A DNA stretch of 64,000 nucleotides from Carpediemonas membranifera BICM (taxonomy: Eukaryota; Protista; Fornicata): contig JAHDYR010000038.1 in assembly GCA_019828565.1 (NCBI GenBank), forward strand, positions 1,190,552 through 1,254,551. Reading direction: 5' to 3'. The translations under genes and the position numbers were made by a program. Positions 2,270 through 53,310 of this stretch are shown here, in pieces (within the stretch, counting starts at the first letter, position 1; every line of letters begins with the position of its first letter). The notes under the pieces are model-generated. The model was not told the origin of the DNA, ran no database searches, and saw only the letters and a list, made by a program, of their open reading frames with translations.

Positions 2270-2335
2270 GCCCGCAGACGTGTAGTAAACCCATCAGCTC
2301 TCCGTTTATCGGTGTAAAATGACTGTCAATCACTC

Positions 2336-3262
2336 TCAATACTCCCCGCGGGGCGTCGTTCGAAACACGGACGTGTCATAGCTTGCCACAAAGCGCGGCG
2401 AGGGGGCCCCGAACCCGTCGTAGTTGTTCCCAGCGTTAGCCAGGGAGAAGTCCAGGTTGGGCACCGAGGCGCCCATCATCGAAGGCACGGCCAGGCCGCC
2501 CAAGCCAGGAGCAGGACCAACTACGCGAGGGGACAGATTGACAGGCTTCTTGCCCGACACGCTCTGAGCCCACCTCGCGACGGGGAATCTGCCGTCAAAG
2601 TCGATGGTCCGGGACTGGATGAGCTTGAGTATCTCCGCCGCACTACTGTGGTCCTTGAACTCGAGGAAGATGTAGCCGCGGTTGAGCTCTGGGTTGTCCG
2701 GCTGGGTCAGGAAGTCGAGGCGGGTCAGGCTGAACGGGGCCAGGCGGACAAACGCTGATCCAACCCGGTCGCGGCTCCATCGGTGGGGGAGGTTGCCAAC
2801 GTAGAGCTTGTTCTTCATGACAGACAGCGTGCAGAAGAGGGGCGTGCCGTTGAAGGGCGTGTGGCGCACTCGGAGAAGGGCGTTCTGTGCATCCATCTTC
2901 GAGACGAACGAGACGAATGCGAAATTGGCTGGCGATCCAGGTGTCGGGTCTCTATGCCGCATCATGCGGAAGCCGCTGAAACCATCAAACTGACGGAAGA
3001 ACTGGCTCATTTCATCTTCCGAACAACCCTCGGGGACGACGTTGACGTAAAGCTCCTTGCCAGCATCAGAAGAGACGAGATACTGCTCCCAGTTTGCTTC
3101 TGTTACCTGTTCTATCTGGTCAATCCCAACTTGTGGCTGCATTACACTGGGATGATCAAGGCGAGGAGAAACGTGTGTTCCCCACCTCAAATTCGGGTCA
3201 ATTTCGTCTACTGTGTTTGGCAACAGACTGAGATCCATTTTGAACGAGCCAAAGCCATCCAT
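2336..3262 (-). CDS. Two-RRM RNA-binding protein
   Basis: RNP2/RNP1 pairs LYVNVV/NFAFVSF and LYVGNL/RGYIFLEF; first ATG at 3262. Confidence 0.85.
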   Translation of the reverse strand: MDGFGSFKMDLSLLPNTVDEIDPNLRWGTHVSPRLDHPSVMQPQVGIDQIEQVTEANWEQYLVSSDAGKELYVNVVPEGCSEDEMSQFFRQFDGFSGFRMMRHRDPTPGSPANFAFVSFVSKMDAQNALLRVRHTPFNGTPLFCTLSVMKNKLYVGNLPHRWSRDRVGSAFVRLAPFSLTRLDFLTQPDNPELNRGYIFLEFKDHSSAAEILKLIQSRTIDFDGRFPVARWAQSVSGKKPVNLSPRVVGPAPGLGGLAVPSMMGASVPNLDFSLANAGNNYDGFGAPSPRFVASYDTSVFRTTPRGEY

Positions 3263-3572
3263 CGGTGATCTTTTCTGTGTGCGAAACTCTGACTGTGTAC
3301 CAGCGATGAAATCGAAGTGCCGCGAAATCGTCCAGCAAATGTTCAGACATAAGCTCCACACCAGCCCTTGTTATCACTGCCCTATGCCGACAGAGGTTGG
3401 CTAGGGTCTATAAAAAGCTTATCTCCGTTGTGATTTAAACTGCAGATTGCGCACTTTCACAGAATGCTGCGGCCGACACTCTCAATGGCACGCACTATTC
3501 AGTCACGGCGAGGGGCATACTTGCAAACATCCGGGTAAAAAAGTGAAACATCGAGATCGCGACCAGTGAAGA

Positions 3573-5126: not shown

Positions 5127-5387
5127 CGCCACCAACGTCCCTTTGGCAAGCCTCGTTGAAGTTGTTAGGGGCGGGAAGACAACTCATCTGGCATCCCCAT
5201 TGCTACGCTTGGGTTGGTGCCCGTGGGACGAATGTTCACATGTCCTCACACTGGCGTGACTGACAGGGGTTGACGAAATTGCACAGAATCGGCCCGATGA
5301 GTCCCTGCCACACCAGAGGGCGTCTAGCAGCGATGTCACACCGGCAATGTCCGCAGACCCTGTCGACTCGGGTCAGTCGGCCCAGCA

Positions 5388-7619: not shown

Positions 7620-7793
7620 CATGGACCCCATCTCCATAAACTGAGCACACGCCGAACACAGTCTTGTGATGGATGGCGGGCACAGCATGGCTCGTTCATC
7701 ACCGTGTTTCATGCTTCGTGCCCTGATGGCATCAGATTTACGCTTTATTGAGATGAGAGATTTAACGGGCAGAGCAACGACAGAAGACAAGCA

Positions 7794-9983
7794 ATGCCAA
7801 GTGAAAACAAGCTTGAAGAAGTGCATGAGGTCATTTTCGATCAGAGAATCCCCGATGCGCATCCACCTGCAGAATGGAATAACGTGATGAGCATCCTAGA
7901 GATCTCTGCCAGGAATGAACCTGAAGCGGCCTGCTTTGGAACCAGATCATTCACAGAGGATGGCCGCGGTGAATATGAGTGGGTTTCCTACAAGGATTCG
8001 CTAGCGATGGTGGAGCAATTCGCCTCTGGTCTTCATTCCCTTGGCCTTCGGAAGGGCGATAAGGTCGGCATCATGTCCAAGAACCGCATCGAGTGGTCTG
8101 TCGCCGACTTCGCGTGTGCCCGCATGGGCCTCATCCTGGTACCCCTCTACGACAGCCAGGGCATCGAGGACGTGCGCTACATCGTCCCCAACTCGGACAT
8201 CACGGCCATCCTCGTGGCCGCCGAGCACCTGCCCCTCCTCAGACAGCTGTGGGACGAGCCCTGCTGCGAGGCTGTCAAGACCATGGTCCTCTTCGACTAC
8301 CGCCTTGACGACGCGGCCCTCCTCCGTGCCGTCCGCCCCGACCTCGCCGAACACACTCTAGCGGTCCCCGAGTACGTCAAGATGTCACTGGACTCCGTCC
8401 CAGCTGACGAGCGGGAGGGTATGTGCGGCATTGTAACCCACGGGTTCACTCAGCTGCTGGCGGTGGGGAAGACGACCCCCGTTCCCGCTCCAAAGGTCAC
8501 TCCCGACGACTGCATCTCGTTCGTGTACACATCTGGCACCACCGGCAGTCCTAAGGGCGTGATGTTGACCCACGCGAACGTGATGTGGGCCGTGACGTCC
8601 TTCTTCACGATCTGGTTCTTGCCCGACGACATGAGGGCACGCCGGGAGTTTGACACAATCATATCGTATCTTCCGTACGCCCACATCTTCATGCGGGTCA
8701 TCTCCTTCCTCGCTCACCACAACATCGCGGGTGTGGCCTTCTATCAGGGCGACACTGCCAAGATCATGGACGACGTCGCCATGCTCAAGCCCACCATCTT
8801 CCCCGCCGTCCCCCGCATCCTGACGCGCCTATTCGACGCCGTAAGTGCTCAGGTTGCCGCCAAGCCCGCTTTCCAACGCTTCGTCTTCTCGACGGCGTAC
8901 AGCTCCAAGCGAAGGGCGCTGTTCGGGTCCGACACCCGTCAGGAGCCCAACTTCCTCGTCAAACGCGTGTTCAAGAAGACGGAGCAAGTCATCGGCGGCC
9001 GGGTGCGTCTCATATTCACCGGATCCGCCCCGCTGCCGGTGCAGGTTAACGAGTTCATACAAGTCGTCTTCGGGTCGCCTCTCATCGAGGGATACGGCCT
9101 CACCGAGTCCGCTGCAACAGCGTCCGCCCAGCTGATCAACGTTCAGGACATGGGCAACGTCGGTGTGCCTGAGGGCAACCTGCAGATCAAGCTGATCGAC
9201 GTGCCCGACCTCGATTACCTCGTCAGCGACAGCCCCAACCCCCGCGGCGAGGTGCTGCTCAAGGGCGGGAACATCTTCAAGGGCTACTACAAGGCGAACG
9301 ACAAGACAGTCGAGGTGATTGACGATGACGGCTGGTTCCACACAGGGGACATCGGCGAGATGCTGCCCGGCAACAGGCTCAAGCTCATCGACCGTAAGCG
9401 GAACATCTTCAAGATGGCCCAGGGCGAGTTCGTGTGTGGGTTTGCCATCGAGGAGGTCTGTGCGTCCAAGTGCCCCGCGGTTGCATCGATCTTCATCCAC
9501 GGAAACCGGTACGAGAGCTTCCTGGTTGCCGTGGTCGTCCCCAACAAGACCATGGTCGACCAATGGTGGGCCGAGCTCGGCAAGGACAAGTCCGTGGCAA
9601 ACGAGGCAAGAATGAGGGACCTCGACATCGTCGTGAAGGTCCACGAGGAGCTCCTCGCAGCCTGTAAGAACGCTGGGATGCGCTCGTTCGAGCATCCCAG
9701 GGCTGTGTTGCTCGACTCAGAGGAGTGGGCTGTCGACAACGGTCTGATGACGCCCTCGATGAAGCCCAAGCGGGCTGCACTCAAGGCCAAGTACAAGCAG
9801 TCGATCCTCCAGACCTATCTCTGTGTCAAGAACAACGTGGCCAGCCCCAGTCGCATGTCGATTAAGGAGGCTGCCGAGCTATCTCTCGACGCTGTTCGCA
9901 TGGTCCACGCTGGTGATGTCGGAGACCTCGACGAGGAGGCGCTGACACAGCTGTCGTTTGGTAGCCATGTGATGAAGTACTAA
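7794..9983 (+). CDS. Long-chain fatty acyl-CoA synthetase (AMP-binding)
   Basis: YTSGTTGSPKG, EGYGLTE and GWFHTGDIG...IIDRKRN motifs; intact 729 aa. Confidence 0.95.
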   Translation: MPSENKLEEVHEVIFDQRIPDAHPPAEWNNVMSILEISARNEPEAACFGTRSFTEDGRGEYEWVSYKDSLAMVEQFASGLHSLGLRKGDKVGIMSKNRIEWSVADFACARMGLILVPLYDSQGIEDVRYIVPNSDITAILVAAEHLPLLRQLWDEPCCEAVKTMVLFDYRLDDAALLRAVRPDLAEHTLAVPEYVKMSLDSVPADEREGMCGIVTHGFTQLLAVGKTTPVPAPKVTPDDCISFVYTSGTTGSPKGVMLTHANVMWAVTSFFTIWFLPDDMRARREFDTIISYLPYAHIFMRVISFLAHHNIAGVAFYQGDTAKIMDDVAMLKPTIFPAVPRILTRLFDAVSAQVAAKPAFQRFVFSTAYSSKRRALFGSDTRQEPNFLVKRVFKKTEQVIGGRVRLIFTGSAPLPVQVNEFIQVVFGSPLIEGYGLTESAATASAQLINVQDMGNVGVPEGNLQIKLIDVPDLDYLVSDSPNPRGEVLLKGGNIFKGYYKANDKTVEVIDDDGWFHTGDIGEMLPGNRLKLIDRKRNIFKMAQGEFVCGFAIEEVCASKCPAVASIFIHGNRYESFLVAVVVPNKTMVDQWWAELGKDKSVANEARMRDLDIVVKVHEELLAACKNAGMRSFEHPRAVLLDSEEWAVDNGLMTPSMKPKRAALKAKYKQSILQTYLCVKNNVASPSRMSIKEAAELSLDAVRMVHAGDVGDLDEEALTQLSFGSHVMKY

Positions 9984-10828
9984 ATGATAATTTGGATGTG
10001 AGGATTGGAGACAAGCTTCGTGTGTGGCAATTCTCCGATGACAACAGCTCGAGGTGACCGGGACGAATGAGAACTTGGGCTCCAGGAAAATGAGCCTACC
10101 CGATGCATAGACCGGATAAATTCTCCATTTGTTCTTGGTCAGCCAGGGCTGTATAAATTGCACTCAATGTCATTCAAATGACTGACGCCAGTGCGGTATC
10201 CAAGCTGTTTCACTCGCCCTCGTGCCTATCATCATCGTCAAACGCGAGTGTCGGGCAGTGTAAGACGTCACCGTTTGAAAAGAATAGAAATGTATTGTTG
10301 CGGACTCCACAGATTGGGTGTAAGCATCGCTCAGATCGAGCATTGTAGAAGGTGGGTATTTCGAGATTCTTTGGACTGCTAGACCACAGTTGTTCGTTTT
10401 TGATGTAGTGCTGATGTTCTGTAAGCCTATAGGAAACTATACGACGAAGAGGAGTACTCTGCGAGTGAGAGGGCGCGTAGATGCGCCGACACAACTCCGG
10501 CGCGGGAACCGCGGACCCAAAATTCGGTCGCTCGATTTTGGCGCGGAGTCGCCAAGTCAAGAACAGAAGCTCGAAAACACGAGTTTACTTCGTGCGTACC
10601 AGCACGGCCCGGTCTGGACCCGAACCGGGCGAACATTCGATCAGTTTGAGCCTCAAACGACCAGTAAATGTTCTACCCCCCATTGGTTTTACCTGCAGCT
10701 AGCTACAGGGACTCGTAACACCCTGGCGTGTTGGGTTTTTTATTTGAGGAGATCGGTCCCTGGGAGTCCAGGGCAGAATCAGGACCGAATCGAATCAGCT
10801 CAGTTTCAAGAAGCTTCATCGAAGCCTC

Positions 10829-37503: not shown

Positions 37504-37679
37504 CCCGTGTACTCTACCGGGAATCTCTGACTGCCTCTTGCTCATGGCTACGACATGGGCCTTGACGGGTGTCATGTCTTGGCTGGACCAGGCTTCTTGG
37601 TCCTCGATCCAGGCTCTCTCTCTGTGGCCGATGGTAAGCTTCTCCTGGACCCATGCTGCCTGCCATACCTGGTGTCTGG
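37504..37679 (-). mobile_element. Short fragment of a LINE ORF1 related to 41636-45141
   Basis: Open frame ..VWQAAW.. and a 17-nt identity (TATGGCAGGCAGCATGG) with 42483-42499 (IWQAAW); same purine-rich sense strand. Confidence 0.5.
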
Positions 37680-37725
37680 GTCAGACAGGCTGACGATCCG
37701 GTAGACTCCGTCCATTCCCACAGGG
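37680..37725 (-). repeat. B2 terminal repeat (46 bp) of DIRS C
   Basis: Identical to 37990-38035 and 50615-50660. Confidence 0.9.
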
Positions 37726-37869
37726 GGGGGTAGGTAATTTATTGTGTCGCGTTCTCGCATCGTCCCGGGTCTATCTCTGTGTAAGCCGGAGTAAATTACC
37801 TCGCTCGACCTTACGTAATGCCGAGCGTCACCCTCCGAAGGAGGGGATCGGGAGCAAGGCTGCCCCGCG

Positions 37870-38035
37870 GTTTCAGTTCGCTCTTGAACAACTGAACCGC
37901 CCTTATGAGACGCACGATCCCGTCTTTGAGATCGTATCGAATCATCCTCGACCTCTCGCGCCGAAGTTTTGGCTCCGCTGGCCTTGCCAGTCAGACAGGC
38001 TGACGATCCGGTAGACTCCGTCCATTCCCACAGGG
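37870..38035 (-). repeat. B1-A2 junction repeat of DIRS C
   Basis: B1 equals B2; A2 (120 bp) equals the element 5' end including the gag start. Confidence 0.88.
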
Positions 38036-38391
38036 AACCAGTCGCCGCCCAAGCGATTGCAGCCGATCGGTGCACTTTAAGACACTCTCGATGTCTTTCA
38101 TGCAAGCTGTGCCCCGGCTGCAATTCATTGCATATGCCAACACAAAGAGCTCAAAACGAGGTCTATAGCCCTCAACGGCGCTTCGTTGAGGAGTTCTAGC
38201 GATTTTTCACTTTTGTTGCGCAATTTCTTCATCTGATGCGCAATTATTGAACCATCGAGCCTAAAAGAGACTCTAAAGCCTTAACGGCTTCCAAATAGCC
38301 AATATCACCTTGTCCATCAAGGTTTATGATTAGCCTCACTAAGGCCCACAATCATACCCCTCGCAGCCACTCCTCAATGGCTTTGAGGGGC

Positions 38392-39258
38392 TTATCTCTT
38401 CTTATCCTTCTCTAATAAGGCTCTGAACGGGGCTACGGACGTGCTGTAGTCCAGGCGAAGCACGTCTTCCACATAACGGATCAATGAGTTCTGGTCAGCC
38501 CATGTGCCCTTCGCCGCAACAACCGGGATAGGGATACCCATCAGAACCAGGTCAGCCGCGCTCCCGCGGCGCAGACCGTGCAGCCGAGCCTGCGTGGAGA
38601 TGATGCCCTTCACCTGGTCCTCAATGACTGAGTAGGGGTGCGACCAGAGAGGGTCTTCGGCCACCGCGCCTGCATCTATCCTATTGACTAGGACCTCAGA
38701 TAGCCAGTGAGCCGGGTCTAGCTCCCCGTCGACTCTCGGGACGAGCTTCTCAACGACCACTCGCCGGGTCTTAGTGCCGTGGATGGAGATTCTTAGCCCG
38801 CGGCGCGCGCTCTCCGCTCTAACGTCACCAACATGCAGGGCATAGATCTCTCCTGGCCTGGAGGTCGTGGCGTAGGTGGTCAGTGCAAAGGCGAAAGCCT
38901 CCTTCCAAAGGTCGTCGTCTCGAGACTGAGGGTGGGCAGCCCGAAGCCTGTCAACCAGAGTGTGCGCGCGAATCGGGAGAGCAGGCCCTCTAAGCTTCCC
39001 AAGAGCGTTCCTTGCCTGCTCTTTGATGACTGCGTCGGCGTCCAGCGGTGGTTCCCATGATGACACCCGGCCGAAGAAGCGACGGATTAGGCTCCACTTC
39101 GAGGTGATTGTATCCTTGGTGACCCTCGAGGCTTGGTCCTTGGCCCATGCTCTTATGACTTCGATGCTGCTAGTGTCAGGTGGAAGGGCACCCCAGAAAC
39201 CCGAGAACTGTTGGAGCACACCCGCGACGTGGCGCTTGTCTACGAATCCACTTAACAT
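38392..39258 (-). CDS. Tyrosine recombinase of DIRS C
   Basis: TTSRPGEI, GTKT, HGLRRGSA, GTWADQNSLIRY. Confidence 0.9.
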   Translation of the reverse strand: MLSGFVDKRHVAGVLQQFSGFWGALPPDTSSIEVIRAWAKDQASRVTKDTITSKWSLIRRFFGRVSSWEPPLDADAVIKEQARNALGKLRGPALPIRAHTLVDRLRAAHPQSRDDDLWKEAFAFALTTYATTSRPGEIYALHVGDVRAESARRGLRISIHGTKTRRVVVEKLVPRVDGELDPAHWLSEVLVNRIDAGAVAEDPLWSHPYSVIEDQVKGIISTQARLHGLRRGSAADLVLMGIPIPVVAAKGTWADQNSLIRYVEDVLRLDYSTSVAPFRALLEKDKKR

Positions 39259-39286
39259 GTCACCCTCGAGGGAGATGGTGAAGATG

Positions 39287-41146
39287 TCACTCCCACAAAC
39301 AGGGCCGCCAATCGGTATGTGCCGTCCGCCTGCAGGGGGTGATCGCTGATAGGTCCGCGTCCTCCGCTTTGACTCTGAAGAACATGCGGTGCGGAGTCAG
39401 CTCTCTCAGCGCAACTGCCGTCGGCGATCTGCAGTCGGACACTAGCAGGACGAGGGCACTTGGTAGGGATCTCGGCTGTGTGGTCCTTGCAATGTGGAGG
39501 TGGCACAGCTTTGCATATACTGCTGATAGGAGCGCGAAGGGTGTCACTGCTAGCCACCTTCCTGTCGACCAGTCCATGTCTATGAACCTGCTGTCGTCGA
39601 CCGTCGACGGGCTGTGTTCTACTCGAGCTCCAAGCCACTCGGAGGGCCAGATCTCTTTCTGCATGGGACCCCACTCGGCTGTGATCCTGTCGATGATCCG
39701 ACGAGGCGCTGAGAGCGTTTCGGACCTCGACAATGCGTCGGCTTGGACGTTCAAGTGACCAGAGACGTGAAGGAGCCTTATCCTGATGGCCCTTTCGCTC
39801 AGTGTGGGTAGCAGGTCCCGTATGACTGAGTCTACAAACTGCGGAGCCTTGGTTGAGCCTTGCTTGTTCCACCAGCTGACTGCTGCCACCGAGTCGGAGT
39901 AGATGGTGACCTCCGCGTCTGTCAACGGCTCTGCTAGGATCAGTCTCACTGCTTGTTCCACTGCTCGGAACTCGAGCAATGTGATGTGCTCGTCCACCGG
40001 GGCCGGCCTGGTGAAGGTGAAGGGTTGACGGCCCGGGATTGTGATCACTCCGCCGAGTCCTGAGTGAGAGGCGTCTGTCATCGCTGTGATGTGGAGCGTC
40101 GGAGACAGACCCCACAGGTGAAGCAGCTCTTGGAAGGACCTTATCGGAGATGGCCGTGATAAGCGGCGCTCCCATTGGATCAGTGCTTCTCTCGCTTCGC
40201 CGGATATGAGTGTGCGGTAGCGGTCCTTCAGTTGGGCTCTCTGGAGGGGTCTGATAGCGGCTCGGCCCTCCGGCCAAATGATGGCTGCAAAGCCGAGATT
40301 GCCCAACAACCGCTGCATGCTGTGTGTCGTGGCCCCCGATGCCAAGGCCTCCCTGACTCGTGAGAGGTACTTCTGCCGCTTGCTGTCCTGCAGAGCGATC
40401 CCCCGCCGGCCAGAGTCCATGACGAAGCCAAGGAAGTCGGTCTGCTGCGTGGGTGAGAGCTGCGATTTCTTCCTGTTGATGACCAGGCCGAGGTTCTCTA
40501 GGAGCTGTAGTATGCCGGGCATCGCAGCGGTCAGTGTCTTCTTGTCCCCGGACAGGAGCCAGTCGTCGAGATAGATGGTCAAGTTGATGCCTGGGAACAT
40601 CCGTGCTACGATCTGCGCTGCTGTCAGCATCACCCTTTGGAAGAAGAATGGCGCTGGGCCCCAGCCGAAGGGTAGGACGTTGAAGGCATAGGGTCTCCCG
40701 TCGACCACGAAACCCAGCAGCGGGCTGTCCGAGGCCCTGACCCCTAACTGGTAGTAGCCCTTGACTAGGTCCAAGCGTGCCATGTAGTCTCCTTCGCGAA
40801 GCTGGGCCATCGCTTGCTTGACTCCCTTCAGCCGAAAGGTTCGATGTTCCGTTGACACTGCGTTCAATGCCCTTAGGTCGTGGATCAGACGCGTCTCTGG
40901 TGGCGTCTTCGGCACAGTGAAGATAGGTGAGATCAAGCTGGGAGACCGGCATGGGCTTGCCGCGCCCAGGCTCAGGAGGGTTTTCAGGTGGTCGCGGAAT
41001 GCCTTGCGGTCCTTGGCGCGAGTTGGTGGTAGGCGCGGATGACGAGGGTGCGCTCTTAGGGATATCGGGACGCCCTCGCGTAGCCACGTAACCACCTCTG
41101 ATGGCGCGCCCAAGTGCCTCCATAGGCGCCACTGCCTGTTGATGCA
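39287..41146 (-). CDS. RT-RNase H-MT-like pol of DIRS C (N-terminus split off by the LINE)
   Basis: LPFGWGPAP, IYLDDW, TDAS, YSDS, NVQADALSR, WGPM..DW..WLAVTPF. Confidence 0.9.
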   Translation of the reverse strand, partial: CINRQWRLWRHLGAPSEVVTWLREGVPISLRAHPRHPRLPPTRAKDRKAFRDHLKTLLSLGAASPCRSPSLISPIFTVPKTPPETRLIHDLRALNAVSTEHRTFRLKGVKQAMAQLREGDYMARLDLVKGYYQLGVRASDSPLLGFVVDGRPYAFNVLPFGWGPAPFFFQRVMLTAAQIVARMFPGINLTIYLDDWLLSGDKKTLTAAMPGILQLLENLGLVINRKKSQLSPTQQTDFLGFVMDSGRRGIALQDSKRQKYLSRVREALASGATTHSMQRLLGNLGFAAIIWPEGRAAIRPLQRAQLKDRYRTLISGEAREALIQWERRLSRPSPIRSFQELLHLWGLSPTLHITAMTDASHSGLGGVITIPGRQPFTFTRPAPVDEHITLLEFRAVEQAVRLILAEPLTDAEVTIYSDSVAAVSWWNKQGSTKAPQFVDSVIRDLLPTLSERAIRIRLLHVSGHLNVQADALSRSETLSAPRRIIDRITAEWGPMQKEIWPSEWLGARVEHSPSTVDDSRFIDMDWSTGRWLAVTPFALLSAVYAKLCHLHIARTTQPRSLPSALVLLVSDCRSPTAVALRELTPHRMFFRVKAEDADLSAITPCRRTAHTDWRPCLWE

Positions 41147-41635
41147 GGGAAATGGTGGAACCAGTTCACCAATGATTTCAGCAAAGTGGAAACACTTCGA
41201 TCATGGATGGACAAGGACCAACAGGCCTGGCCTATATGGATAGGGCAGTGCCCCATGGAGCTCAGAAGGAGCGGCCTTGGCCTCCTGTCTGAACATTCAA
41301 GGGTTGCTATCAGGGCATACCGCTGGGCGCGAGTGGGAGCTCCACGCCCATACCAAGGAATCAAAGTGTCTTCATGGAACGTATGTTTACAAGGAAAAGG
41401 AAAACAACCGTCGAGGGCCAGTGCTAGCACCGGCGGCTACATGGTTTTGTCAAGACCACAAGGAAGGAAGGGCAGCACAAAAGGGAAACAGGGGCCGTCG
41501 ATAGAGGCTAAAAAGGAGACTACGAACAAAGCAACAACAACTACACAGAAAGGCCCCGCTACTCAGAAAAGGGCGACGCATTTTTAGGACCGCGCCTTTT
41601 TGAAAGAATGGCCTATATAGTACGGAGCATGGACA

Positions 41636-44600
41636 ATGGGAGAAACTGGAAGGCCTGGACGGAGACCTCACCCGGATATGTACATGTGGCCCGACTTTCG
41701 GACCCAAAAATTCCGACCCAGTTTATGGACTAGGAAAAGGGGAGAAATTTTGCACTCAACAATGCAGGTAGAAATACCGACAAGGATCAGGGATTCCACG
41801 CAGAAGCAGTGGGAGGACATCAGGGAACTACTGGACAGCTTCCTCGCTGAAAGGAACGATTCAAGGACTCTACTTCTTCGTAGAACAGGCAAGTTTACAG
41901 GAAAGTCGCTCAATGCGAACTCCAAAGGACGCAAGGAAGTAATCATGAACGCCAGACGCATCCTCTTCGCAACCGGCGTCACTGACAACAAGGACATCAT
42001 CCTCAGGAACCCATGCGGCATCCACGGCCTCCGCGACCTTTTCTACATGCTCACAGAGGCGCTCAACCCCAGAGACGAGGAAGCAAAGGACATGGCACAG
42101 GCACTGGAGCCCAAGACGCTGAAAGCGGGCTTCACTGGCATGGCAAGATGGCCATCTGAGAAGGACATCGAGACGGCGATCCTCAAGCCGAAGGAAGATG
42201 GGCCCATCGAATGGGATGTAGACAGGGACAGCGTCAAGAAGGCCGAAGGGTCGTTCATACTGGTATCAGGGGCTCATGGAGACGAGGCCGTAGAAGGCGT
42301 GCCTTACGACAAGGTATGGGATCCGGCAAACCAAGGCCCGGTCACCAGAGTGGCCTACGAGCAAGAGGACGGCAAGTACAGGGTCATCCTAGAGCTAAGC
42401 GACACGTCAGCATGGTCCATCAGCCGCTTGATGGAGGAGGCTAGGGACATCCTCAGGCTTCAGGCACCGGAGGCCCCGGCCATATGGCAGGCAGCATGGA
42501 ACAAGTCAGGGATCTACCTGAAGGGCAGAACCAATATCCTGGGCGAAGGGGAGGAGACCCCCCTTAGCAACGAGCCGCCGTTCCGGAAGGTGAGGCTGGA
42601 AGTGCTCAAGGCCACCTCGGTCCGCAGCAATAGGGACGAACATGCCGATCTGGACAGGTCGTCCGCTAGCACGGTCATCGACGGAGACGAGGAGCAACAT
42701 GTCAAGGACAAGGAGGAACGACGCCAGCAGGCCACCATGCCCGGCAGAAGAAGCCTCGACGACAGCCTCCTGGAAGTGAACAAGGACATGGTCGGGGCCA
42801 ACCAAGGCAAGATCGACCAGGACGAGGAGGTCGACTCAAACAAGGTCAGCAGCCAGCCGCCGAGGATGCCTAGAAAGGACAAGGAGAAACGACTGGTGAT
42901 CGGAGCCATCGACTTCGAGTGCGCAGACCCTGGCGTCAAGAAGGCAGGGATCCCTGCCATCCCGGTTGAGGGCGGGATCGTACTCTTTGACCTCAGCACT
43001 GGGGACATTCTTGGACACGGGCATGGCCTGTATTACCAGGACATACCGGCAGCAAGCATGGACCAAGCGAGGTACACGGCATGGGCAGTGACGGGGCTGC
43101 CGCCGGCCACCTTCGTGGAGGTCGGGACGGGGCGGCCGCCGATCGAGTATGAGAAGCACATACATACTTTCAGGGACTGGGCCAACCGCCTGGCGGCTCA
43201 GCTGGCAAGGATCGAAAGGTCGGAGGGTTGGAAGATAATCATGTATGCAAAGGGGGTGGAGATGGAAAGCTTCCTCCTCACGAACCCCACAAATGGACTG
43301 GAGCAAGGAACCAGGGAATTCTTCCAAGCTAGGCTGGTGGACGAGAAGAAGCTACCAGAGATCCTGGAGAACAACGGCAAGGAGGAGGCTGGCCAAAACC
43401 TCAGGGACAACCTCGACAAGGCCAACTACCTGGAAGCAGTAACAACATGGTCAAATGGATGGCAGAACAGGAGCGAGCCCAAGGGAGTCTGTCCGTACCA
43501 CAGACACACCGCGGGTTGCTACCACTGTGGGTTGGCGGATACAGTAGTCTTCACAGCCAGGATCAGGGCCCTATGCAAGGAGAGGATGAGCACCCCAGAC
43601 GTCTACCACTACATGGGTAAGGCACTCGACAAGACCATGGAAGCAGTCGGGAAGGCGGAGCCGGGCATGGATATCATGGGAGGCCCGGAATTCGCGACAA
43701 GGAGGGACACCTTTGAGATCTTCGGCACGTACCCGATCGGGGACGCAAGGGACGTCAGCAGGGAAGTCGGCGACAGGATCCTCGTAGTCCCGGACAACGG
43801 ACACCGCTTCGGCATCGGCTTCGGGTTCGGGGAGGTTCTGTTGGGCATGAAGGGCATCTTACTGGCCCCCCTCACAATCATGGACAACGAAGGTGTACTG
43901 GAGAGAAGCCCGCTATGGACCATCATGGAAAGAGCCACGGCTAACCAGCTCCGCATGGTACGCGTCAGGAAGGGCCTAGGGGCAGCAAGGGAGGAGGACA
44001 TCATAACCATGGCCATGCTATACGAGTGGTGGCCCTCGAAGGAGGCTACGGCTCATCAAGGAGTCTGGGGCTGCGACGACCTAGCAGAGAGCCTCAGGGA
44101 CTATGAGAAGGTCATAGTCAACGTCAAGGCCCCCAGGAACAGGGGGTAGGATCACCCTAGGGGCGAGCTTCATCCCGAGAGACTGGGGGCATGGTCAGGG
44201 TCAGCGAGGCTGGGACCATCCTAAGCCGCATGCGCAAGGAAGGGGCCAGACTAGTCTCGGCAGCTATCCCGGACGAGCCCAGAGCCAACACAGTCAATGT
44301 CCCAGGCATCACGTATGTCCCCACCATCGACGGAAAGTCCGAACAGCCATACCAAAGTAGGTTCTTCGACAACGGCCTGGAGGAAAAGGCGAGGCGGATT
44401 AGCACCAGAATGGTGGGCAGGCACTTCGGCCAGGACGCGGATCAAGGACATCACGACCAGCATGGAGACAGGGAAGAGGACAGAAGGGTAGGACACGGAG
44501 CCGGCGGTAGAGCTGGTGTCAGAGCTGACGACAGAACCGGCGACAGAGCTGGTAACATGAACAGGACCTCGGATCGTAACCACGGAGGAGACGACAGGGA

Positions 44601-45141
44601 GAGACAGGACAACACGGGAACGCAGATGAGAGGCTCGTTCAGCGGGAACACCGGGGCCGGTAGAGGCTCAGAGGGAGGCATGGACAACAGCAAGGATCAC
44701 TCTTCCTCCACGACGCTCAAGCGCAAGGAGGGCAGCACGAGTAGGATCATGGACTCGGACAGCGGAAAGAGAAGCAGGCACGAAGAGGACATGGACTGGG
44801 AGTCTGGAAGCAGACAGGCAACCGGCATGGACTCGGAGAAGCTGCGGCTCCGAAAGCAGTTGGCAGAGGCGCAACAAGAGATCTCAGCGCTCAAGGCTGC
44901 CCGACTCATGCAAGAGCAAGGCCACGGAAGGTTGGTGCTCTCCGGCGTCGCGACTAAGCCCAGCAAGGAGAAGCCCACGATCCCCCGGCACAAGCACAAG
45001 AAGGCTAAGAAGGCCAAGCAGATCTCACCCATGGACCTGATGACCCAGTTCATCACGGTAATGCAGAGTCTACAAGGACAGCAAGTGAGTCAGGCCGAGG
45101 ACAGCTGCAGCGGCAGTGGGGAGTCCACGGAGGAGGAGTAA
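41636..45141 (+). CDS. LINE ORF1 with Maelstrom-like DEDD domain (837-aa ORF, probably extending through G-run frameshifts to 45141)
   Basis: IDFEC...IPVEGGIVLFDLSTG.I....HGLY...P...ARYTAWAVTGLP...YAKG...CPYHRHTAGCYHCGLAD; coiled coil and basic patch at the C-terminus. Confidence 0.72.
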
Positions 45142-45474
45142 GGACATGGTAAAGCAGTATTCTTTCAAGGAACAAGCAACATTTTCTTTATAATTCACAA
45201 GCCCTGGCTCCCACCCAGGGCCCGGCATTAGCTGAAATGCACTGCCGGTAGGCTGTAGCGGCAGCCAAAGGGGGGGTCACGTCATATCGTCCCCCTCCTA
45301 AGTACCCTGCCCGAAGAATGGAAGGTCACCAGGTGGTAACAAGGTTGGCCTGACAAGGGTCACCGAGACCGGCATCTAGGCCCCTTGTCAGGACAAGGAT
45401 AGCAGGAGAGGAGCGGGAAGCTGGGGCTCCCAAATTCTGGGAATTCGCAGGATAAGGAAACAGGACAAAAGGCA

Positions 45475-48400
45475 ATGGTAACCTACAAGATACTTAGTCT
45501 GAACACAGAGGGACACATAGGAAGAGGAAAGGACTTCACGGCGTCTATGGCAACGGCGATTCAGCTAAGGTTGAAGGACATAGAGGCAGTACTCATACAA
45601 GAGACATGGAGAACGGCGAATACGAGGGTTCATTGCTTCATGGACCTTGACTACGCACTAGCAGGGAGGGAGACGGAAGAGGACCTGGTCTTAGCCAACG
45701 AAAAACGAAAGGCGGATGTCAAAAAGTCAGCACCGCATCAACCGACAACTAGGCATAGCAGGCAATGACGAACCTGCGCCAAGATGGAAGGGAACAAGGG
45801 AAGGCATCGGCACGATAGTGAGCCCACACGCAACTGCAAAGTGGGACATCGGCATAACGGACAGCCTATCGGGAAGAGTGCAAGCCAGCATAATGAGAAC
45901 CGGCAGGGACATACTAGTCATCAACGTGTATGGCCCTCCATCCGGCACCACAGCAAGCAGGAGAAGGATGGATTCAGGGACACTATACAGAAGATCATGG
46001 ACATGAAAGGGAGCATGGAGGCCATAATTATGGGAGACTGGAACATCGACCCAGGCCAGATGGAAAGATCCACCCGGTGGAAGGATATGATGGAGAAGCA
46101 CAGGCTCAAAGCCATCATACCCAAGTCTGGGACGCTCACATCAGGAACATCAACCCCGGACTTTGCAGTGACAACACCAGGAATCCAGGGGGCGGAGATT
46201 GAGGTGGTAGAGTCTCAGAAGGTCGGGGTATGGGGCTCAGCACACAATGGAATCACACTAGCATGGAAGGAACAACGGTACTATGGCAGAAGTGAGCGAG
46301 ACGTGGCTCTGGCCATACCCGAGGTGCACACCTGGCCCATGAAAAAGAAGGAGGGGCCAGTCACAGTCTCAAAGCTGAACAGGATCAAGAGCTCGGACCA
46401 ATGGGAAGAGACTATAAGAGCATGCATGGGCGACCCAGTGAACAACAGGGGAGCAAAGGCAAGGGACAAAGTGTTCGGGAACGGAGTGTGGAGCGAACTC
46501 CAGCGAACCCCATGGACAGAAATAGGCAACAGGACCAGGAAGGAAAGGATGAAAGAGGAGCTGGAGAAATACTGGGGAGAGCGCAGGGCCAAATGGGTGG
46601 CCGACATCAGCAGAAGTGCAAAAAGGGGGTATAGGGCCTCAAGGGCCTCAGTGGAAGCTGCCATCAGAAGGTGGTGGTGTGACAACCAATACAAGGGAAT
46701 GCCGGAGAGCCTCCTCAAGGACGGAGTGGTAACCACGGACAAGGCGGCCATCAGCGAGATCCTCTTGCAACAGTATGCTAGAGTCAGCAGAGGCAGGGAA
46801 CCCACCTGGAAGACATGGAGGGGCAGGGACGGAAATGAGTTCAAGGAAAGCGAGGTCAAAGCCGCAATCAAAAGGATCAGGAGGGACACCGCACCAGGGC
46901 CTGACCTCACATCTGGAGACATGCTGAGAGAGCTGGATGAGAAAGGCCTTAGGGAAGTGACGAGGCTCATCAACAGGGTCTACAGGGAGGGCGACGTACC
47001 CAAAGCATGGAAGTATGCCACAGTGTCGGCCATACACAAGACAGGGAAGCCAAGGGTCAAGCCGGAATCATATAGACCAATATCCTTGACACCACTGCTG
47101 TACAGGGTCTATGGTAGATTGCTCAAGATACGTCTGGAAGCAGCAACGAAAAGGTTCATACCAAGAGAACAGGCTGGTTTCCAGTCAGACAGGGACGTCA
47201 TCCAGCAGATACAGTACATTGTGCAGCGGCACCAGGAGGGGGTGAGACCACGTCAATCTTTCTGGACATCGAGAAGGCATATGACACGGTACCAAGGGAC
47301 ATTCTCATGGATAAGCTACAGGGTATGGGGGTGGAGGAGCACTTGATCAGGGCAATTCAAGGCACAATAAAGGAAACCTGGATATCAGTCAAGGGGGCAA
47401 AGGCATGGGAAAGAACCAACAGGGGAGTTAAGCAAGGGTGCGTCCTGGCACCGACACTGTTTGTGCTGTTCATGGCTAACTGGCCCCACCTGGCCAGAAA
47501 GAAAAATCAAGGGAGAACGGTACGACATCAGAGAACCGCCAAGGACCACGAGCCACCTCAGCGACCGACTACCGGCAGCACTTACCATGTTTGTGGATGA
47601 CACTGCGGTCACAGGGAGCAAACCGGAGCATAGCCAGATGGTCGCCAACATAATGGTGGACATAATCAGAGAGCATGAAATGAGGGTGAACGCCCAGAAG
47701 AATGTAATGATTAGCGTGGACAGAACAGCCCTAGTCAGGATCGAGGGGGTAACACTACTGCCAGAGAAGGAGGCGAGATACCTGGGATTATGGATCGCAA
47801 GTGGGAAGGACCCTATGTCGGCCTGCATAAGGCGGAAACAGGAGCAGAGCGAAAGGTACAAGAGACTGGTGAGATGGGCAGGGTGGACCAGGGCAAACAT
47901 GCCAGCACTAGCGAGCAGGCTACTACTGGAAATATATATATGGCCCAGGATCCTCTTCGGAGTCGAGGTGTGGGGGAACGCACCGGGAGGTAGAAGGATC
48001 TGGAATGACTGGCAGGGAATCATGGCAGGAACAGGACCGGGAGGGGGCGCAGCCATGAGGCTGATGAATGGATGGGTGGACCTCCAGGCACACATGGAAT
48101 GGCTGGCAGTCAAAAGGATAGTCAACTACAGGGACCAGGATATACCAGTCAGAAACAGAGAATGGGGGCGGGGCACGGTTATGTGGGAAGCTAGGGAGAG
48201 AGTGCAGCATCTACTGGAGGGCACCAGAGAAGGAGCCCCTAAACCAGCGCTACTGGATTATGGCATGGAAACGATCAGGAGGGGGTGGATGAAGCGGTGC
48301 AAAAAGCCGTACGGCACTAGGACTAATGGAAATCATGGGGACAAGGAAATTAAGCAAGTGTCTGCAAGGTAAGCCTACGGTAGACCGAAAGGCTGGGAAG

Positions 48401-48923
48401 GGGCAAAGCAGGGCGGAATGGAAGAGAATTGTATCCATTGCAGCCAATGTCAGCCCATCCCCATCGTCGGCAGAGAGAGGGGAGGGCCCTATGAGAGCCA
48501 TCACAGAGCTGGCCCAAGGCGCTGACCTGAAGAGAGAAATTAGCAGACTATGCCCCCTATGCTCGGAGGAGTCGGAGGTGAGCCTGTTCTACAGGATCAT
48601 TAGGGAAAAAGCCAGGACCAGCAAGGAAGCAGGAAATGATCAGGGAGTGGGCAGAGGGCCAGAGGCTAGGATCGGCAGCGCACATAATCTGTGAATGCCC
48701 GGCAGTAGACAGGGGAGAAGCTTGGACAAAGCTGTGGACAGCAGCGAAGCACAAAACTAAGGACTTGGAAGTAAGGCAGGGCCCCCAGGGCGAATGGTAC
48801 CAGGAAAGACCCATCCTAGAATTACAGCAACTAATAATATGGGGCTCGGAGGACATTTGGGAAGGCCTCACGGCAGGACTACGGGAACTGGCAAAGGTTT
48901 ACAACAGCTTCAAGGTGGAATAG
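45475..48923 (+). CDS. LINE ORF2: AP endonuclease - reverse transcriptase - Zn-finger-like (frameshifted)
   Basis: SLNTEG, IQETW, GDWN, PDF, SAH; PGPD, YRPISL, QAGF, LDIEKAYD, GVKQGCVLAPTLF, FVDD, YLG; HIICECP. Confidence 0.9.
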
Positions 48924-49994
48924 AAGCATGTCATGAACCCCTGACTCCAGGACCGGGAAGGGATGGACAAGGAATCAGCCATGGACCACCCTCGCTGGTG
49001 CTAAGCTCCTGGGATCAGTGAGGAAAGGCCCCACGTATCCCGGTAGCCAGGAACCAAAGCAAGGGAAGGAACGACTGCAAGGAAAGAACAGGAAGGACAG
49101 ACCAGAAATAAGAAAGAAAAGGACATGCGACAAGGACAGAGCAAGGATAAGGTCAAGGAAATCCATATCCATATGGTTGCACCACTCGTTGGGACCCCAA
49201 GGAAACTGCAGGGACTGGCCACGGGGGTCGGAGGGGCACAGGTGCCCCTGCCGCCCTTGTTAACGACATGGGAAACCAAGGACATGTAGTGCAAGCGAAA
49301 TGTTGTAAGGGGTAACAGGACAACCAGGCCTAGTGCCTGGGGGTACACCACCCATGCCCTGACCCACGCCACCTAACCGGGGTAGACAGCATGGACTTAG
49401 TCACTTTCCCCGCCTTCGGGTAGGCTTCTTAACAGAGTCGAGGGGGCATGGAATTGGGGAACCGGACAGACGAGAGGGTGCCGTGGCTGAACGGCTCTAC
49501 AAGGACTGCAGGGAAGCAAGGAGTGTCATAGTCAAGGTTCTGCAGGACGATCCTGCCTGTCAATGCCCCGAGGACAGACCCCCAGGCTCCCCGGATAGTT
49601 GCCGGACTTTCAGGGAGACAGGAAAGCATATTTGCACGGAGATGGCCGCAGGGCCTCTGGGGCGATTGGAATCGGCTTTCCGCGGAGACAGTAGCACCGA
49701 AAGCCCAAGGCAAACGCTGCTGACCAGTTTGCCACGGGAAATAGGCAGTACCCCGGGGCACTCAGCTCCAAGACAACGGGAAACAAGCTCAGTCCGGGGT
49801 CAGAATCCAAGCACCATAAATTTCTTTCTTTCTGGGAAATGGTGGAACTGACGGGGGAGGAGGTGCTGTGGACGGGGGAGGAGGAGGCGTCGGTGACAGG
49901 GGAGGAGATTGAGGAGTAGTGGGATTTGTGGTTGGATGAGGAGTTAGGACCTGTGGACCGGGGCGAGGATCCTTGATGGGTGGTTTCTTTTGAC

Positions 49995-50570
49995 TTAGTT
50001 TGAGTTCTTCGTGCCGGCGCGCTTCGGCTTCTTCCCGTGAAAACCCCGGTTGCCGCCGTCATGTCCGGTGCCGGGCTTGGTGTTCTTCTCGGTCAGGCGG
50101 GGGATCTTGGACAGGGTGCGGAGGACGAGAGTCTCGATCTCCGTCTCGTTCATCTCGTGGCGCTCGGCAAGGGCGGCCATGCCCGCGGTGGAGACAGCAG
50201 AGGCGGCTAGGTAGCCGTAGCGGTCCTTCACCCATAGGACTCGGTGACGGAGGAAGATGCGAGCGAGTACGGCGAAGCCACTGATTCGATTGAACTTGAA
50301 GCTGCGGTAGATCTCCTCGAGGAACTCCGCCTCTTCGCGCATAGTGGATGAAGCAGGACGCTTCCAAGTCATGGTGGTCTCTTGCCGAAGCAGATCTACT
50401 GTCTCTCGGACGTTGCCGCCGGCAGTAAATGCGTCTTGAAGCTGTTGAACGGTGGCTTTGAGCTCTGCGATCTCTTGGGCGGCGTCTCCCATCTGTTTCA
50501 GTTCGCTCTTGAACAACTGAACCGCCCTTATGAGACGCACGATCCCGTCTTTGAGATCGTATCGAATCAT
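49995..50570 (-). CDS. Gag-like ORF1 of DIRS C
   Basis: Coiled coil plus WKRPASSTMREEAEFLEE, homologous to gag A/B/D. Confidence 0.8.
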   Translation of the reverse strand: MIRYDLKDGIVRLIRAVQLFKSELKQMGDAAQEIAELKATVQQLQDAFTAGGNVRETVDLLRQETTMTWKRPASSTMREEAEFLEEIYRSFKFNRISGFAVLARIFLRHRVLWVKDRYGYLAASAVSTAGMAALAERHEMNETEIETLVLRTLSKIPRLTEKNTKPGTGHDGGNRGFHGKKPKRAGTKNSN

Positions 50571-50614
50571 CCTCGACCTCTCGCGCCGAAGTTTTGGCTC
50601 CGCTGGCCTTGCCA

Positions 50615-53310
50615 GTCAGACAGGCTGACGATCCGGTAGACTCCGTCCATTCCCACAGGGAACCAGTCGCCGCCCAAGCGATTGCAGCCGATCGGTGCAC
50701 TTTAAGACACTCTCGATGTCTTTCATGCAAGCTGTGCCCCGGCTGCAATTCATTGCATATGCCAACACAAAGAGCTCAAAACGAGGTCTATAGCCCTCAA
50801 CGGCGCTTCGTTGAGGAGTTCTAGCGATTTTTCACTTTTGTTGCGCAATTTCTTCATCTGATGCGCAATTATTGAACCATCGAGCCTAAAAGAGACTCTA
50901 AAGCCTTAACGGCTTCCAAATAGCCAATATCACCTTGTCCATCAAGGTTTATGATTAGCCTCACTAAGGCCCACAATCATACCCCTCGCAGCCACTCCTC
51001 AATGGCTTTGAGGGGCTTATCTCTTCTTATCCTTCTCTAATAAGGCTCTGAACGGGGCTACGGACGTGCTGTAGTCCAGGCGAAGCACGTCTTCCACATA
51101 ACGGATCAATGAGTTCTGGTCAGCCCATGTGCCCTTCGCCGCAACAACCGGGATAGGGATACCCATCAGAACCAGGTCAGCCGCGCTCCCGCGGCGCAGA
51201 CCGTGCAGCCGAGCCTGCGTGGAGATGATGCCCTTCACCTGGTCCTCAATGACTGAGTAGGGGTGCGACCAGAGAGGGTCTTCGGCCACCGCGCCTGCAT
51301 CTATCCTATTGACTAGGACCTCAGATAGCCAGTGAGCCGGGTCTAGCTCCCCGTCGACTCTCGGGACGAGCTTCTCAACGACCACTCGCCGGGTCTTAGT
51401 GCCGTGGATGGAGATTCTTAGCCCGCGGCGCGCGCTCTCCGCTCTAACGTCACCAACATGCAGGGCATAGATCTCTCCTGGCCTGGAGGTCGTGGCGTAG
51501 GTGGTCAGTGCAAAGGCGAAAGCCTCCTTCCAAAGGTCGTCGTCTCGAGACTGAGGGTGGCCAGCCCGAAGCCTGTCAACCAGAGTGTGCGCGCGAATCG
51601 GGAGAGCAGGCCCTCTAAGCTTCCCAAGAGCGTTCCTTGCCTGCTCTTTGATGACTGCGTCGGCGTCCAGCGGTGGTTCCCATGATGACACCCGGCCGAA
51701 GAAGCGACGGATTAGGCTCCACTTCGAGGTGATTGTATCCTTGGTGACCCTCGAGGCTTGGTCCTTGGCCCATGCTCTTATGACTTCGATGCTGCTAGTG
51801 TCAGGTGGAAGGGCACCCCAGAAACCCGAGAACTGTTGGAGCACACCCGCGACGTGGCGCTTGTCTACGAATCCACTTAACATGTCACCCTCGAGGGAGA
51901 TGGTGAAGATGTCACTCCCACAAACAGGGCCGCCAATCGGTATGTGCCGTCCGCCTGCAGGGGGTGATCGCTGATAGGTCCGCGTCCTCCGCTTTGACTC
52001 TGAAGAACATGCGGTGCGGAGTCAGCTCTCTCAGCGCAACTGCCGTCGGCGATCTGCAGTCGGACACTAGCAGGACGAGGGCACTTGGTAGGGATCTCGG
52101 CTGTGTGGTCCTTGCAATGTGGAGGTGGCACAGCTTTGCATATACTGCTGATAGGAGCGCGAAGGGTGTCACTGCTAGCCACCTTCCTGTCGACCAGTCC
52201 ATGTCTATGAACCTGCTGTCGTCGACCGTCGACGGGCTGTGTTCTACTCGAGCTCCAAGCCACTCGGAGGGCCAGATCTCTTTCTGCATGGGACCCCACT
52301 CGGCTGTGATCCTGTCGATGATCCGACGAGGCGCTGAGAGCGTTTCGGACCTCGACAATGCGTCGGCTTGGACGTTCAAGTGACCAGAGACGTGAAGGAG
52401 CCTTATCCTGATGGCCCTTTCGCTCAGTGTGGGTAGCAGGTCCCGTATGACTGAGTCTACAAACTGCGGAGCCTTGGTTGAGCCTTGCTTGTTCCACCAG
52501 CTGACTGCTGCCACCGAGTCGGAGTAGATGGTGACCTCCGCGTCTGTCAACGGCTCTGCTAGGATCAGTCTCACTGCTTGTTCCACTGCTCGGAACTCGA
52601 GCAATGTGATGTGCTCGTCCACCGGGGCCGGCCTGGTGAAGGTGAAGGGTTGACGGCCCGGGATTGTGATCACTCCGCCGAGTCCTGAGTGAGAGGCGTC
52701 TGTCATCGCTGTGATGTGGAGCGTCGGAGACAGACCCCACAGGTGAAGCAGCTCTTGGAAGGACCTTATCGGAGATGGCCGTGATAAGCGGCGCTCCCAT
52801 TGGATCAGTGCTTCTCTCGCTTCGCCGGATATGAGTGTGCGGTAGCGGTCCTTCAGTTGGGCTCTCTGGAGGGGTCTGATAGCGGCTCGGCCCTCCGGCC
52901 AAATGATGGCTGCAAAGCCGAGATTGCCCAACAACCGCTGCATGCTGTGTGTCGTGGCCCCCGATGCCAAGGCCTCCCTGACTCGTGAGAGGTACTTCTG
53001 CCGCTTGCTGTCCTGCAGAGCGATCCCCCGCCGGCCAGAGTCCATGACGAAGCCAAGGAAGTCGGTCTGCTGCGTGGGTGAGAGCTGCGATTTCTTCCTG
53101 TTGATGACCAGGCCGAGGTTCTCTAGGAGCTGTAGTATGCCGGGCATCGCAGCGGTCAGTGTCTTCTTGTCCCCGGACAGGAGCCAGTCGTCGAGATAGA
53201 TGGTCAAGTTGATGCCTGGGAACATCCGTGCTACGATCTGCGCTGCTGTCAGCACGCTGGGCCCCAGCCGAAGGGTAGGACGTTGAAGGCATAGGGTCTC
53301 CCGTCGACCA
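50615..53310 (-). mobile_element. DIRS C' - near-identical, 5'-truncated tandem copy of C sharing the A repeat
   Basis: 50495-53310 duplicates 37870-40707 (small deletion at ~53255); YR 51017-51883, pol 51912-53310. Confidence 0.92.
51017..51883 (-). CDS. Tyrosine recombinase of DIRS C'
   Basis: One amino-acid difference from 38392-39258. Confidence 0.9.
   Translation of the reverse strand: MLSGFVDKRHVAGVLQQFSGFWGALPPDTSSIEVIRAWAKDQASRVTKDTITSKWSLIRRFFGRVSSWEPPLDADAVIKEQARNALGKLRGPALPIRAHTLVDRLRAGHPQSRDDDLWKEAFAFALTTYATTSRPGEIYALHVGDVRAESARRGLRISIHGTKTRRVVVEKLVPRVDGELDPAHWLSEVLVNRIDAGAVAEDPLWSHPYSVIEDQVKGIISTQARLHGLRRGSAADLVLMGIPIPVVAAKGTWADQNSLIRYVEDVLRLDYSTSVAPFRALLEKDKKR

Follow-up and report, generated by a model that had tools for sequence, protein, structure and literature searches.

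Proteins encoded by the first open reading frame (ORF1) of LINEs (long interspersed nuclear elements) are known as RNA chaperones with RRM, CCHC or coiled-coil segments or, rarely, esterases, and the Maelstrom (MAEL) domain is best known as an anti-transposon factor of animal hosts. As an earlier note on the DNA described here had stated, protist MAEL domains keep the catalytic residues that animals lost: they retain both the DEDDh set and a Glu-Cys-His-Cys (ECHC) set of zinc ligands (PMC2628886; PMC4408791), and an amoebal MAEL protein with both sets is an active Mg/Mn-dependent exoribonuclease (PMC4408791). The nucleoprotein (NP) of Lassa virus likewise combines both sets and acts as a 3'-5' exoribonuclease, whereas the metazoan domain has lost the catalytic residues and binds single-stranded RNA without cleaving it (PMC4408791). 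Here we describe a LINE of the fornicate protist Carpediemonas membranifera BICM whose ORF1 encodes a domain that, judged by its profile and its modelled fold, belongs with the protist-type MAEL domain. The element lies in a 64,000-nucleotide stretch of contig JAHDYR010000038.1 (assembly GCA_019828565.1, positions 1,190,552 to 1,254,551, forward strand), hereafter the window, which is part of contig C26 of the 69-contig, 24.2-Mb assembly searched here. In full-text searches of the literature, no description of a LINE ORF1 with a MAEL or DEDDh domain came to light, in agreement with the earlier note, which knew of no described LINE with such an architecture; we take the element to be a LINE whose ORF1 enzyme domain is new.

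The motifs of the domain (Table 1) all fall within ORF1 residues 419-648, and ORF1 also contains GHGHG (H463) and TGLPPATF. All the motifs that the earlier note had picked out from the sequence alone are there; only the x7 that it gave for the last one does not hold, the spacing being C-x2-H-x8-C-x3-D. We aligned 11 LINE-borne domains, namely those of the window copy, five diverged Carpediemonas families, four ORF1s of the assembly GCA_002919055.1 and the P0016 family; the others are 22-50% identical to the domain of the window copy, and only 21 columns are invariant. These include D426, E428, E445, E544, D569, C619, H622, H630, C631 and D635 (D22, E24, E41, E140, D165, C215, H218, H226, C227 and D231 when numbered from the stretch at window 42848-43735), and since catalytic and zinc residues stay invariant across sequences this diverged, the motifs are not a product of chance. 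Five of them, D426, E428, E544, H630 and D635, constitute the DEDDh set, retained as in the protist-type domain, and would form the two-metal catalytic site of an RNase H-like fold; H630 and D635 provide H-x4-D, the third exonuclease motif (Exo III) of such enzymes. Another four, E445, C619, H622 and C631, are invariant in the 11 LINE sequences and in two MAEL proteins and make up a predicted structural zinc site. The zinc ligands of Bombyx Maelstrom are E137, C290, H293 and C302 (PMC4408791), and the C-x2-H-x8-C spacing of the LINE domain is identical to that of C290, H293 and C302; the H-C-x3-D arrangement, which puts the last zinc ligand next to the catalytic histidine, has been noted for both MAEL and Lassa NP (PMC4408791).

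These residues also bear on the idea that the domain is an RNA-binding module only, as catalytically dead as that of metazoan Maelstrom, for which the RNA binding without cleavage of the metazoan domain (PMC4408791) and the presence of Glu instead of the canonical Asp as third acidic residue may be cited. We regard it as unlikely: five DEDDh positions that stay invariant down to 22% identity would not be expected without catalytic constraint, metazoan MAEL has those very residues replaced (N124 and R306 in Bombyx), and the exonucleases of bdelloid transposable elements have a DEED set as well (PMC5408684).

The relation to Maelstrom is seen in profile comparisons. An exhaustive HMMER search of 1.84 billion representative sequences with the LINE profile A1 matched only 16 proteins: fragments of Carpediemonas ORF1, the ORF1s of GCA_002919055.1 and a single outsider, P0017 (E 5.9e-5), a protein of 352 aa from Rhizamoeba saxonica in which Pfam recognises Maelstrom at 5.7e-19. 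When the LINE-only profile A3, built from the 11 sequences above, was compared by hhalign with a profile (A4) of the MAEL pair P0017 and P0020, both of which carry PF13017, the two aligned with a probability of 98.5% and an E-value of 2.2e-15 over 188 columns, from IDFE to HCALAD, with AKG..ME and C.[YF]H......HCALAD in common. An AlphaFold2 model of the domain from a six-family alignment (mean pLDDT 75.5, pTM 0.78) points to a DnaQ/DEDDh fold of the RNase H-like type, as the matches from Foldseek, VIA-align and the ESM Atlas are all DEDDh or MAEL. Besides MAEL domains (4YBG, 5AF0, 9NHC and 9NHS), the Foldseek list against the PDB contains only exonucleases of the DEDDh type (3'hExo, TREX1/2, Orn, RNase T and ERI3), all listed matches having E-values of ∼2-9e-3, while in the ESM Atlas shape search the highest query TM, 0.55 over 209 residues, belongs to a cluster of chordate 'maelstrom homolog' proteins, 95% of it PF13017, with RNase_T and Rv2179c-like clusters at 0.43-0.50.

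It is because of the P0017 match, the hhalign E-value and the retention of both residue sets that we group the LINE domain with protist MAEL, and the description in the earlier note of a Maelstrom-type DnaQ/DEDDh domain with intact acidic residues and an ECHC site is upheld by fold, profile alignment and invariant residues alike. The same evidence makes it very improbable that we are dealing with an ordinary DEDDh exonuclease, similar to RNase T, ERI or Rv2179c, in which the Cys and His residues are coincidental and no specific relation to Maelstrom exists. Such enzymes do share the Foldseek list; however, the exhaustive profile search matches a Pfam-recognised MAEL protein and no ordinary exonuclease, the hhalign match to MAEL proteins covers the whole domain, E445, C619, H622 and C631 are invariant with exactly the MAEL spacing, and the longest structural matches are the Bombyx and chordate Maelstrom domains. 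The outcome that would have spoken against the earlier note, a best match to a DEDDh exonuclease without the ECHC site, was thus not the one obtained.

A protein search of the genome returned 142 matches to the domain, in identity tiers of 97-100%, 45-50%, ∼34% and lower, about 24 of them being near-identical, full-length and free of stop codons. At 16 loci fetched from the diverged tiers, an APE endonuclease and a reverse transcriptase (APE-RT) follow on the same strand, with the domain 2-3 kb upstream of them, in every case in which the sequence reached that far. Across the Carpediemonas families, domain identity to the window declines in step with that of the reverse transcriptase (RT): nearer families have 45-50% in the domain and 64-78% in the RT, further ones about 32% and 43-54%. 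In the P0016 family (∼24% domain identity, at least two copies) the domain is followed by an APE domain, and in GCA_002919055.1, contig L037 (PPCM01001449.1) encodes a 1,250-aa ORF1 with the domain and then a 1,177-aa APE-RT ORF2, an order repeated on contigs L038 and L039 up to the contig ends. Just downstream of ORF2 on L037, positions 9824-10660 encode a 278-aa product with a weak Chromo-domain match.

Profiles of the other conserved parts of the Carpediemonas ORF1 protein (ORF1p) also match the ORF1s of GCA_002919055.1, weakly, at E-values of 4e-5 to 0.02 for the N-terminal region and 5e-7 to 2e-4 for the middle domain (aa ∼655-840), and for this reason the whole ORF1p is, by sequence comparison, homologous between the two sets of LINEs, with the exonuclease as its best-conserved part. 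As the domain is shared across diverged families and diverges in step with the RT, its sequences also indicate that it is an old, integral component of the LINE lineage, which comprises at least four diverged families in Carpediemonas as well as LINEs of GCA_002919055.1. The link to APE-RT, which the earlier note had proposed to follow into other copies and genomes, therefore holds in diverged families and in this second assembly, and the domain is found within copies bounded by target-site duplications (TSDs), not absent from them. We also considered that ORF1 could be a host gene adjoining a LINE, and rejected this because in every copy the TSDs enclose the frame.

Coordinates of the element and its features are collected in Table 1.

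Table 1. The Carpediemonas LINE and its parts, in window coordinates.
Feature	Position	Strand	Remarks
Left target-site duplication, 15 bp, GGGAAATGGTGGAAC	41147-41161	.	Read directly; identical 15-mer recurs 3' of the element
Full-length APE-RT LINE, 8,672 bp, within a DIRS-like element	41162-49833	+	At least 7 full-length copies, 99-100% identical
ORF1 in the window copy, 837 aa: conserved N-terminal region, exonuclease domain, conserved middle domain	41636-44149	+	
Predicted Maelstrom-type DEDDh 3'-5' exonuclease domain, ORF1 aa ∼415-650	42878-43585	+	
Exo I motif D426-F-E428 (IDFEC)	42911-42919 (D426 42911-13, E428 42917-19)	+	Invariant in alignments A2 and A3
E445 (PVEGG), predicted zinc ligand, E of ECHC	42968-42970	+	Invariant; aligned with the conserved PCEIG of MAEL
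E544, Exo II acidic residue, AKG..ME (YAKGVEME)	43265-43267	+	Invariant, including the Pfam-MAEL proteins P0017 and P0020
C619-x2-H622-x7-H630-C631-x3-D635 (CPYH...HCGLAD)	43490-43540 (C619 at 43490, D635 43538-40)	+	Predicted zinc C/H/C interleaved with Exo III H-x4-D
ORF1 continuation, out of frame in the window copy: R/D/G-rich region, heptad-like stretch, basic patch, acidic tail	44191-45141	+	
ORF2 (APE endonuclease and reverse transcriptase), fragmented in the window copy	45475-48372	+	
Simple-repeat 3' tail (TTTC)n, without poly(A)	49819-49833	+	
Right target-site duplication, 15 bp, GGGAAATGGTGGAAC	49834-49848	.	

The element is, as the earlier note had read it, a TSD-bounded LINE of 8.67 kb. 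At least seven full-length copies, aligned over positions 1-8672 of the query in a DNA search, are 99-100% identical, and each of the six others fetched has its own, differing duplication of 13-15 bp. A (TTTC)n or (TTC)n tail ends all seven full-length copies, with the duplication directly after it. Dispersed copies, variable TSDs, a defined 3' end and the lack of long terminal repeats (LTRs) are those of an APE-type LINE, and the near-identity of full-length copies that each have their own TSD makes this a young family. The same DNA search found internally deleted copies (C1:773278-779987 and C9:127966-134674; C27:64183-70507, C54:248552-254894 and C43:22163-28507), which retain ORF1 and the start of ORF2 without most of the RT. 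They are of two deletion types (element positions ∼5376-7323 and ∼5368-7690), each present at two or three loci with identical breakpoints, which suggests mobilisation in trans of these RT-less derivatives that still bear ORF1. Around the window copy, the DIRS-like retroelement that hosts it occupies 37572-41161 and 49849-53292 on the minus strand, where it encodes a tyrosine recombinase (38392-39258) and an RT/RNase H (39287-41113); a near-identical second set of its ORFs at 51017-53255 implies that this host element is tandem or nested.

We describe the frames of ORF1 and ORF2 as they stand and have mended none of them. Relative to the sister copy L003, in which ORF1 extends to 1,167 aa and is contiguous with the continuation listed in Table 1, the window copy has one extra G in the G run preceding its stop at 44147-49, and another further on. 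Both ORF1 and ORF2 are interrupted in every copy, at differing places despite the 99-100% identity, and contigs of an independent sequencing run differ from the window by deletions of 1, 1 and 2 bases at 45467, 45721 and 45946. Given near-identical copies broken at different places, the G-run differences and the deletions in the independent run, error in homopolymer length in long reads fits the frame breaks at least as well as real decay.

In ORF2, Pfam matches are weak on the window pieces; sister copies exceed the Pfam thresholds for both APE endonuclease (Exo_endo_phos_2, 28.8 bits) and reverse transcriptase (RVT_1, 113.4 bits). ORF1 and its continuation match no Pfam family at E-values up to 1, and hence no RRM, CCHC, PHD, SGNH esterase or HMG domain, which agrees with the contrast that the earlier note drew to the usual ORF1 domains, although a Pfam-negative ORF1 could still hold a divergent RRM, the AlphaFold2 model of the N-terminal region (aa 43-345) being unusable at pLDDT 38. 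In public annotation these ORF1 proteins are 'hypothetical', with one labelled 'Splicing factor U2AF' (P0006, KAG9395705.1); the latter is an ORF1 fragment made up of the middle domain, the R/D-rich tail and, ahead of them, the last part of the exonuclease domain, and its label is probably a misannotation arising from the low-complexity tail.

The earlier note had gone further and read ORF1 as a captured transposon-silencing factor, which our results do not support: silencing is a derived role that the domain, once inactivated, plays in metazoans, the protist form being an active exoribonuclease (PMC4408791), and the domain is ancient in at least four LINE families and in GCA_002919055.1, with no cellular MAEL detected. 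A profile of the MAEL pair searched against the genome found LINE ORF1s only, in the P0016 family and the families described above, and no cellular MAEL gene; a scan of the genome with PF13017 found nothing, which counts for little as control genomes were silent too. As every examined match to the MAEL profile is LINE-borne, no cellular MAEL gene is seen that could have been the source of a recent capture. ORF1 is not an orthologue of metazoan Maelstrom either, in that it has no HMG box and keeps the catalytic residues, and its gene resides in TSD-bounded mobile copies.

From the observed fold, residues, homology and APE-RT linkage we infer what the domain catalyses, on which substrate and to what biological end. 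Going by the homologous MAEL protein of Entamoeba and by Lassa NP, the domain would be a Mg/Mn-dependent 3'-5' exoribonuclease which, as part of ORF1p, would be delivered in cis to the ribonucleoprotein of its own element. Its role is most likely 3'-end work on the element RNA, because these LINEs lack poly(A), each of the seven copies having a precise end at a short repeat: the enzyme may trim read-through transcripts to the non-polyadenylated (TTTC)n end that ORF2p would need for target-primed reverse transcription. Clearance of template RNA would be as natural a job for such an enzyme, the Pfam scan having seen no RNase H domain in ORF2. A model in which the exonuclease stops at a structured 3' end finds no support in the 3' untranslated region (49170-49835), which folds no better than its dinucleotide shuffles (minimum free energy -248.3 kcal/mol, with -246.8 kcal/mol as the mean of the shuffles; z -0.23).

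A different role is suggested by the arenaviruses. The survey of host Argonaute and Piwi genes that the earlier note had called for found two Piwi-domain (Argonaute-type) genes in the genome, C7:87108-88037 (L035) and C65:23790-24737 (L036), in frames of 823 and 796 aa, and the host may, in view of these two genes, have a pathway of the RNA interference (RNAi) type. Against such a pathway, ORF1p could coat the element RNA while its exonuclease destroys double-stranded or small-RNA triggers, blunting Argonaute silencing as proposed by analogy with arenavirus NP; Lassa NP is itself an RNA-binding nucleoprotein with a DEDDh/ECHC exonuclease (PMC4408791), and an arenavirus nucleoprotein cluster is found among the protein-language-model neighbours of the LINE domain (0.90). 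We hold this counter-defence to be rather unlikely. It differs from the 3'-end role only in the task assigned to the enzyme, and the likeness to the C-terminal domain of arenavirus NP (Arena_ncap_C) consists of the shared motif logic and that one neighbour: the Pfam scan of ORF1 at E-values up to 1 matched no family, the arenavirus NP C-terminal model included, and no arenavirus NP stands among the top 50 structural matches. A Foldseek search of viral models likewise returned generic exonucleases of phages, giant viruses and mycoviruses; arenavirus NP was not among them, and nothing pointed to a viral donor. The wider picture that would follow, of a LINE lineage with an arenavirus-NP-like ORF1p in which an RNA coat is joined to an active, zinc-stabilised DEDDh exonuclease that removes element-derived double-stranded or small RNAs and so evades Argonaute, is accordingly offered as a tentative and somewhat doubtful one.

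Taken together, we consider it highly probable that this LINE lineage encodes a large, multi-domain ORF1p whose best-conserved part is an old, vertically inherited Maelstrom-type DEDDh exonuclease, most likely engaged in 3'-end trimming. Several observations weigh against this: 1) the structural scores of DEDDh exonucleases and MAEL are near-ties; 2) the domain does not reach the gathering threshold of PF13017 and has no Pfam match at E-values up to 1; 3) neither the A1 nor the A3 profile matched a solved MAEL chain by sequence, as phmmer and both profile searches of the PDB sequences gave chance matches only; 4) the language-model neighbours are generic DEDDh families and the one arenavirus cluster, not MAEL; 5) the Glu found as third acidic residue, albeit the same in P0017 and P0020, departs from the Asp of DEDDh; 6) the catalytic and zinc sites were assigned from sequence alignment, not from the coordinates of the three-dimensional model; 7) no run on record as RNA contains the LINE; and 8) the evidence does not discriminate among the candidate biological roles. 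Regarding transcription, a single contig of 161 nt at 43754-43913 in one run of guessed RNA type, and short, low-depth LINE contigs in a second run whose type is not recorded, support no conclusion.

An exonuclease in ORF1p, apparently active going by its residues, would enrich the replication cycle of LINEs with an enzymatic activity that is new to it, and here a Maelstrom domain sides with the transposon in the conflict. It also makes ORF1p a tractable protein for the roles that a 3'-5' exonuclease may play in a retroelement, whether in generating 3' ends for target-primed reverse transcription, in removing template RNA or in evading RNAi. Were the arenavirus-like role to prove true, nucleases of the MAEL type would have served genetic parasites, and not hosts alone, as a weapon, raising the question of who had it first.

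Among known systems, the protist MAEL exoribonucleases (e.g., Entamoeba histolytica EHI_192630 and the PF13017 protein P0017 of Rhizamoeba) are like the LINE domain in having DEDDh and ECHC residues together, and share with it AKG..ME, C.YH......HCALAD and a profile-profile E-value of 2e-15; however, they are stand-alone cellular proteins of ∼270-350 aa, whereas the LINE domain, sub-threshold in Pfam, is part of a mobile-element ORF1p of ∼1,170 aa. Metazoan Maelstrom, of the piRNA pathway (PDB 5AF0, 4YBG and 9NHC), shows the same fold and predicted zinc-ligand spacing and provides the best and longest structural matches, but it has an HMG box and no catalytic residues and serves the host against transposons, in contrast to a LINE domain that is transposon-encoded, has no HMG box and keeps its catalytic residues intact. 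In its architecture, ORF1p parallels the arenavirus nucleoproteins, where, as in the C-terminal exonuclease domain of Lassa NP, a genetic parasite has a DEDDh exonuclease with ECHC as part of the protein that packages its RNA (PMC4408791), although that parasite is an RNA virus and not a retroelement, and its protein gives no sequence match and no top-ranked structural match to the LINE domain.

Two further systems, the nearest precedents in the literature, are found among retrotransposons. In bdelloid rotifers, LTR retrotransposons and Athena/Terminon elements encode an ORF3 with a 3'-5' exonuclease of the DnaQ superfamily, with an intact DEED set and a proposed role in RNA 3'-end processing (PMC5408684). 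According to the paper describing them, no retrotransposon had previously been reported to carry an exonuclease; Maelstrom is named there solely as an analogue on the host side (PMC5408684). Unlike the LINE ORF1 domain, these exonucleases are RNase D-like (DEDDy), have no zinc site and form a separate ORF in LTR and Penelope-like elements. The SGNH esterase in the ORF1p of CR1, L2 and RTEX elements, on the other hand, sets a precedent for a LINE whose gag-like first ORF combines an enzyme domain with a coiled coil (PMC3905857), but is a lipid-directed hydrolase of a different fold, whereas the domain of the Carpediemonas LINE is, by its predicted catalytic residues, an exonuclease directed at nucleic acids.

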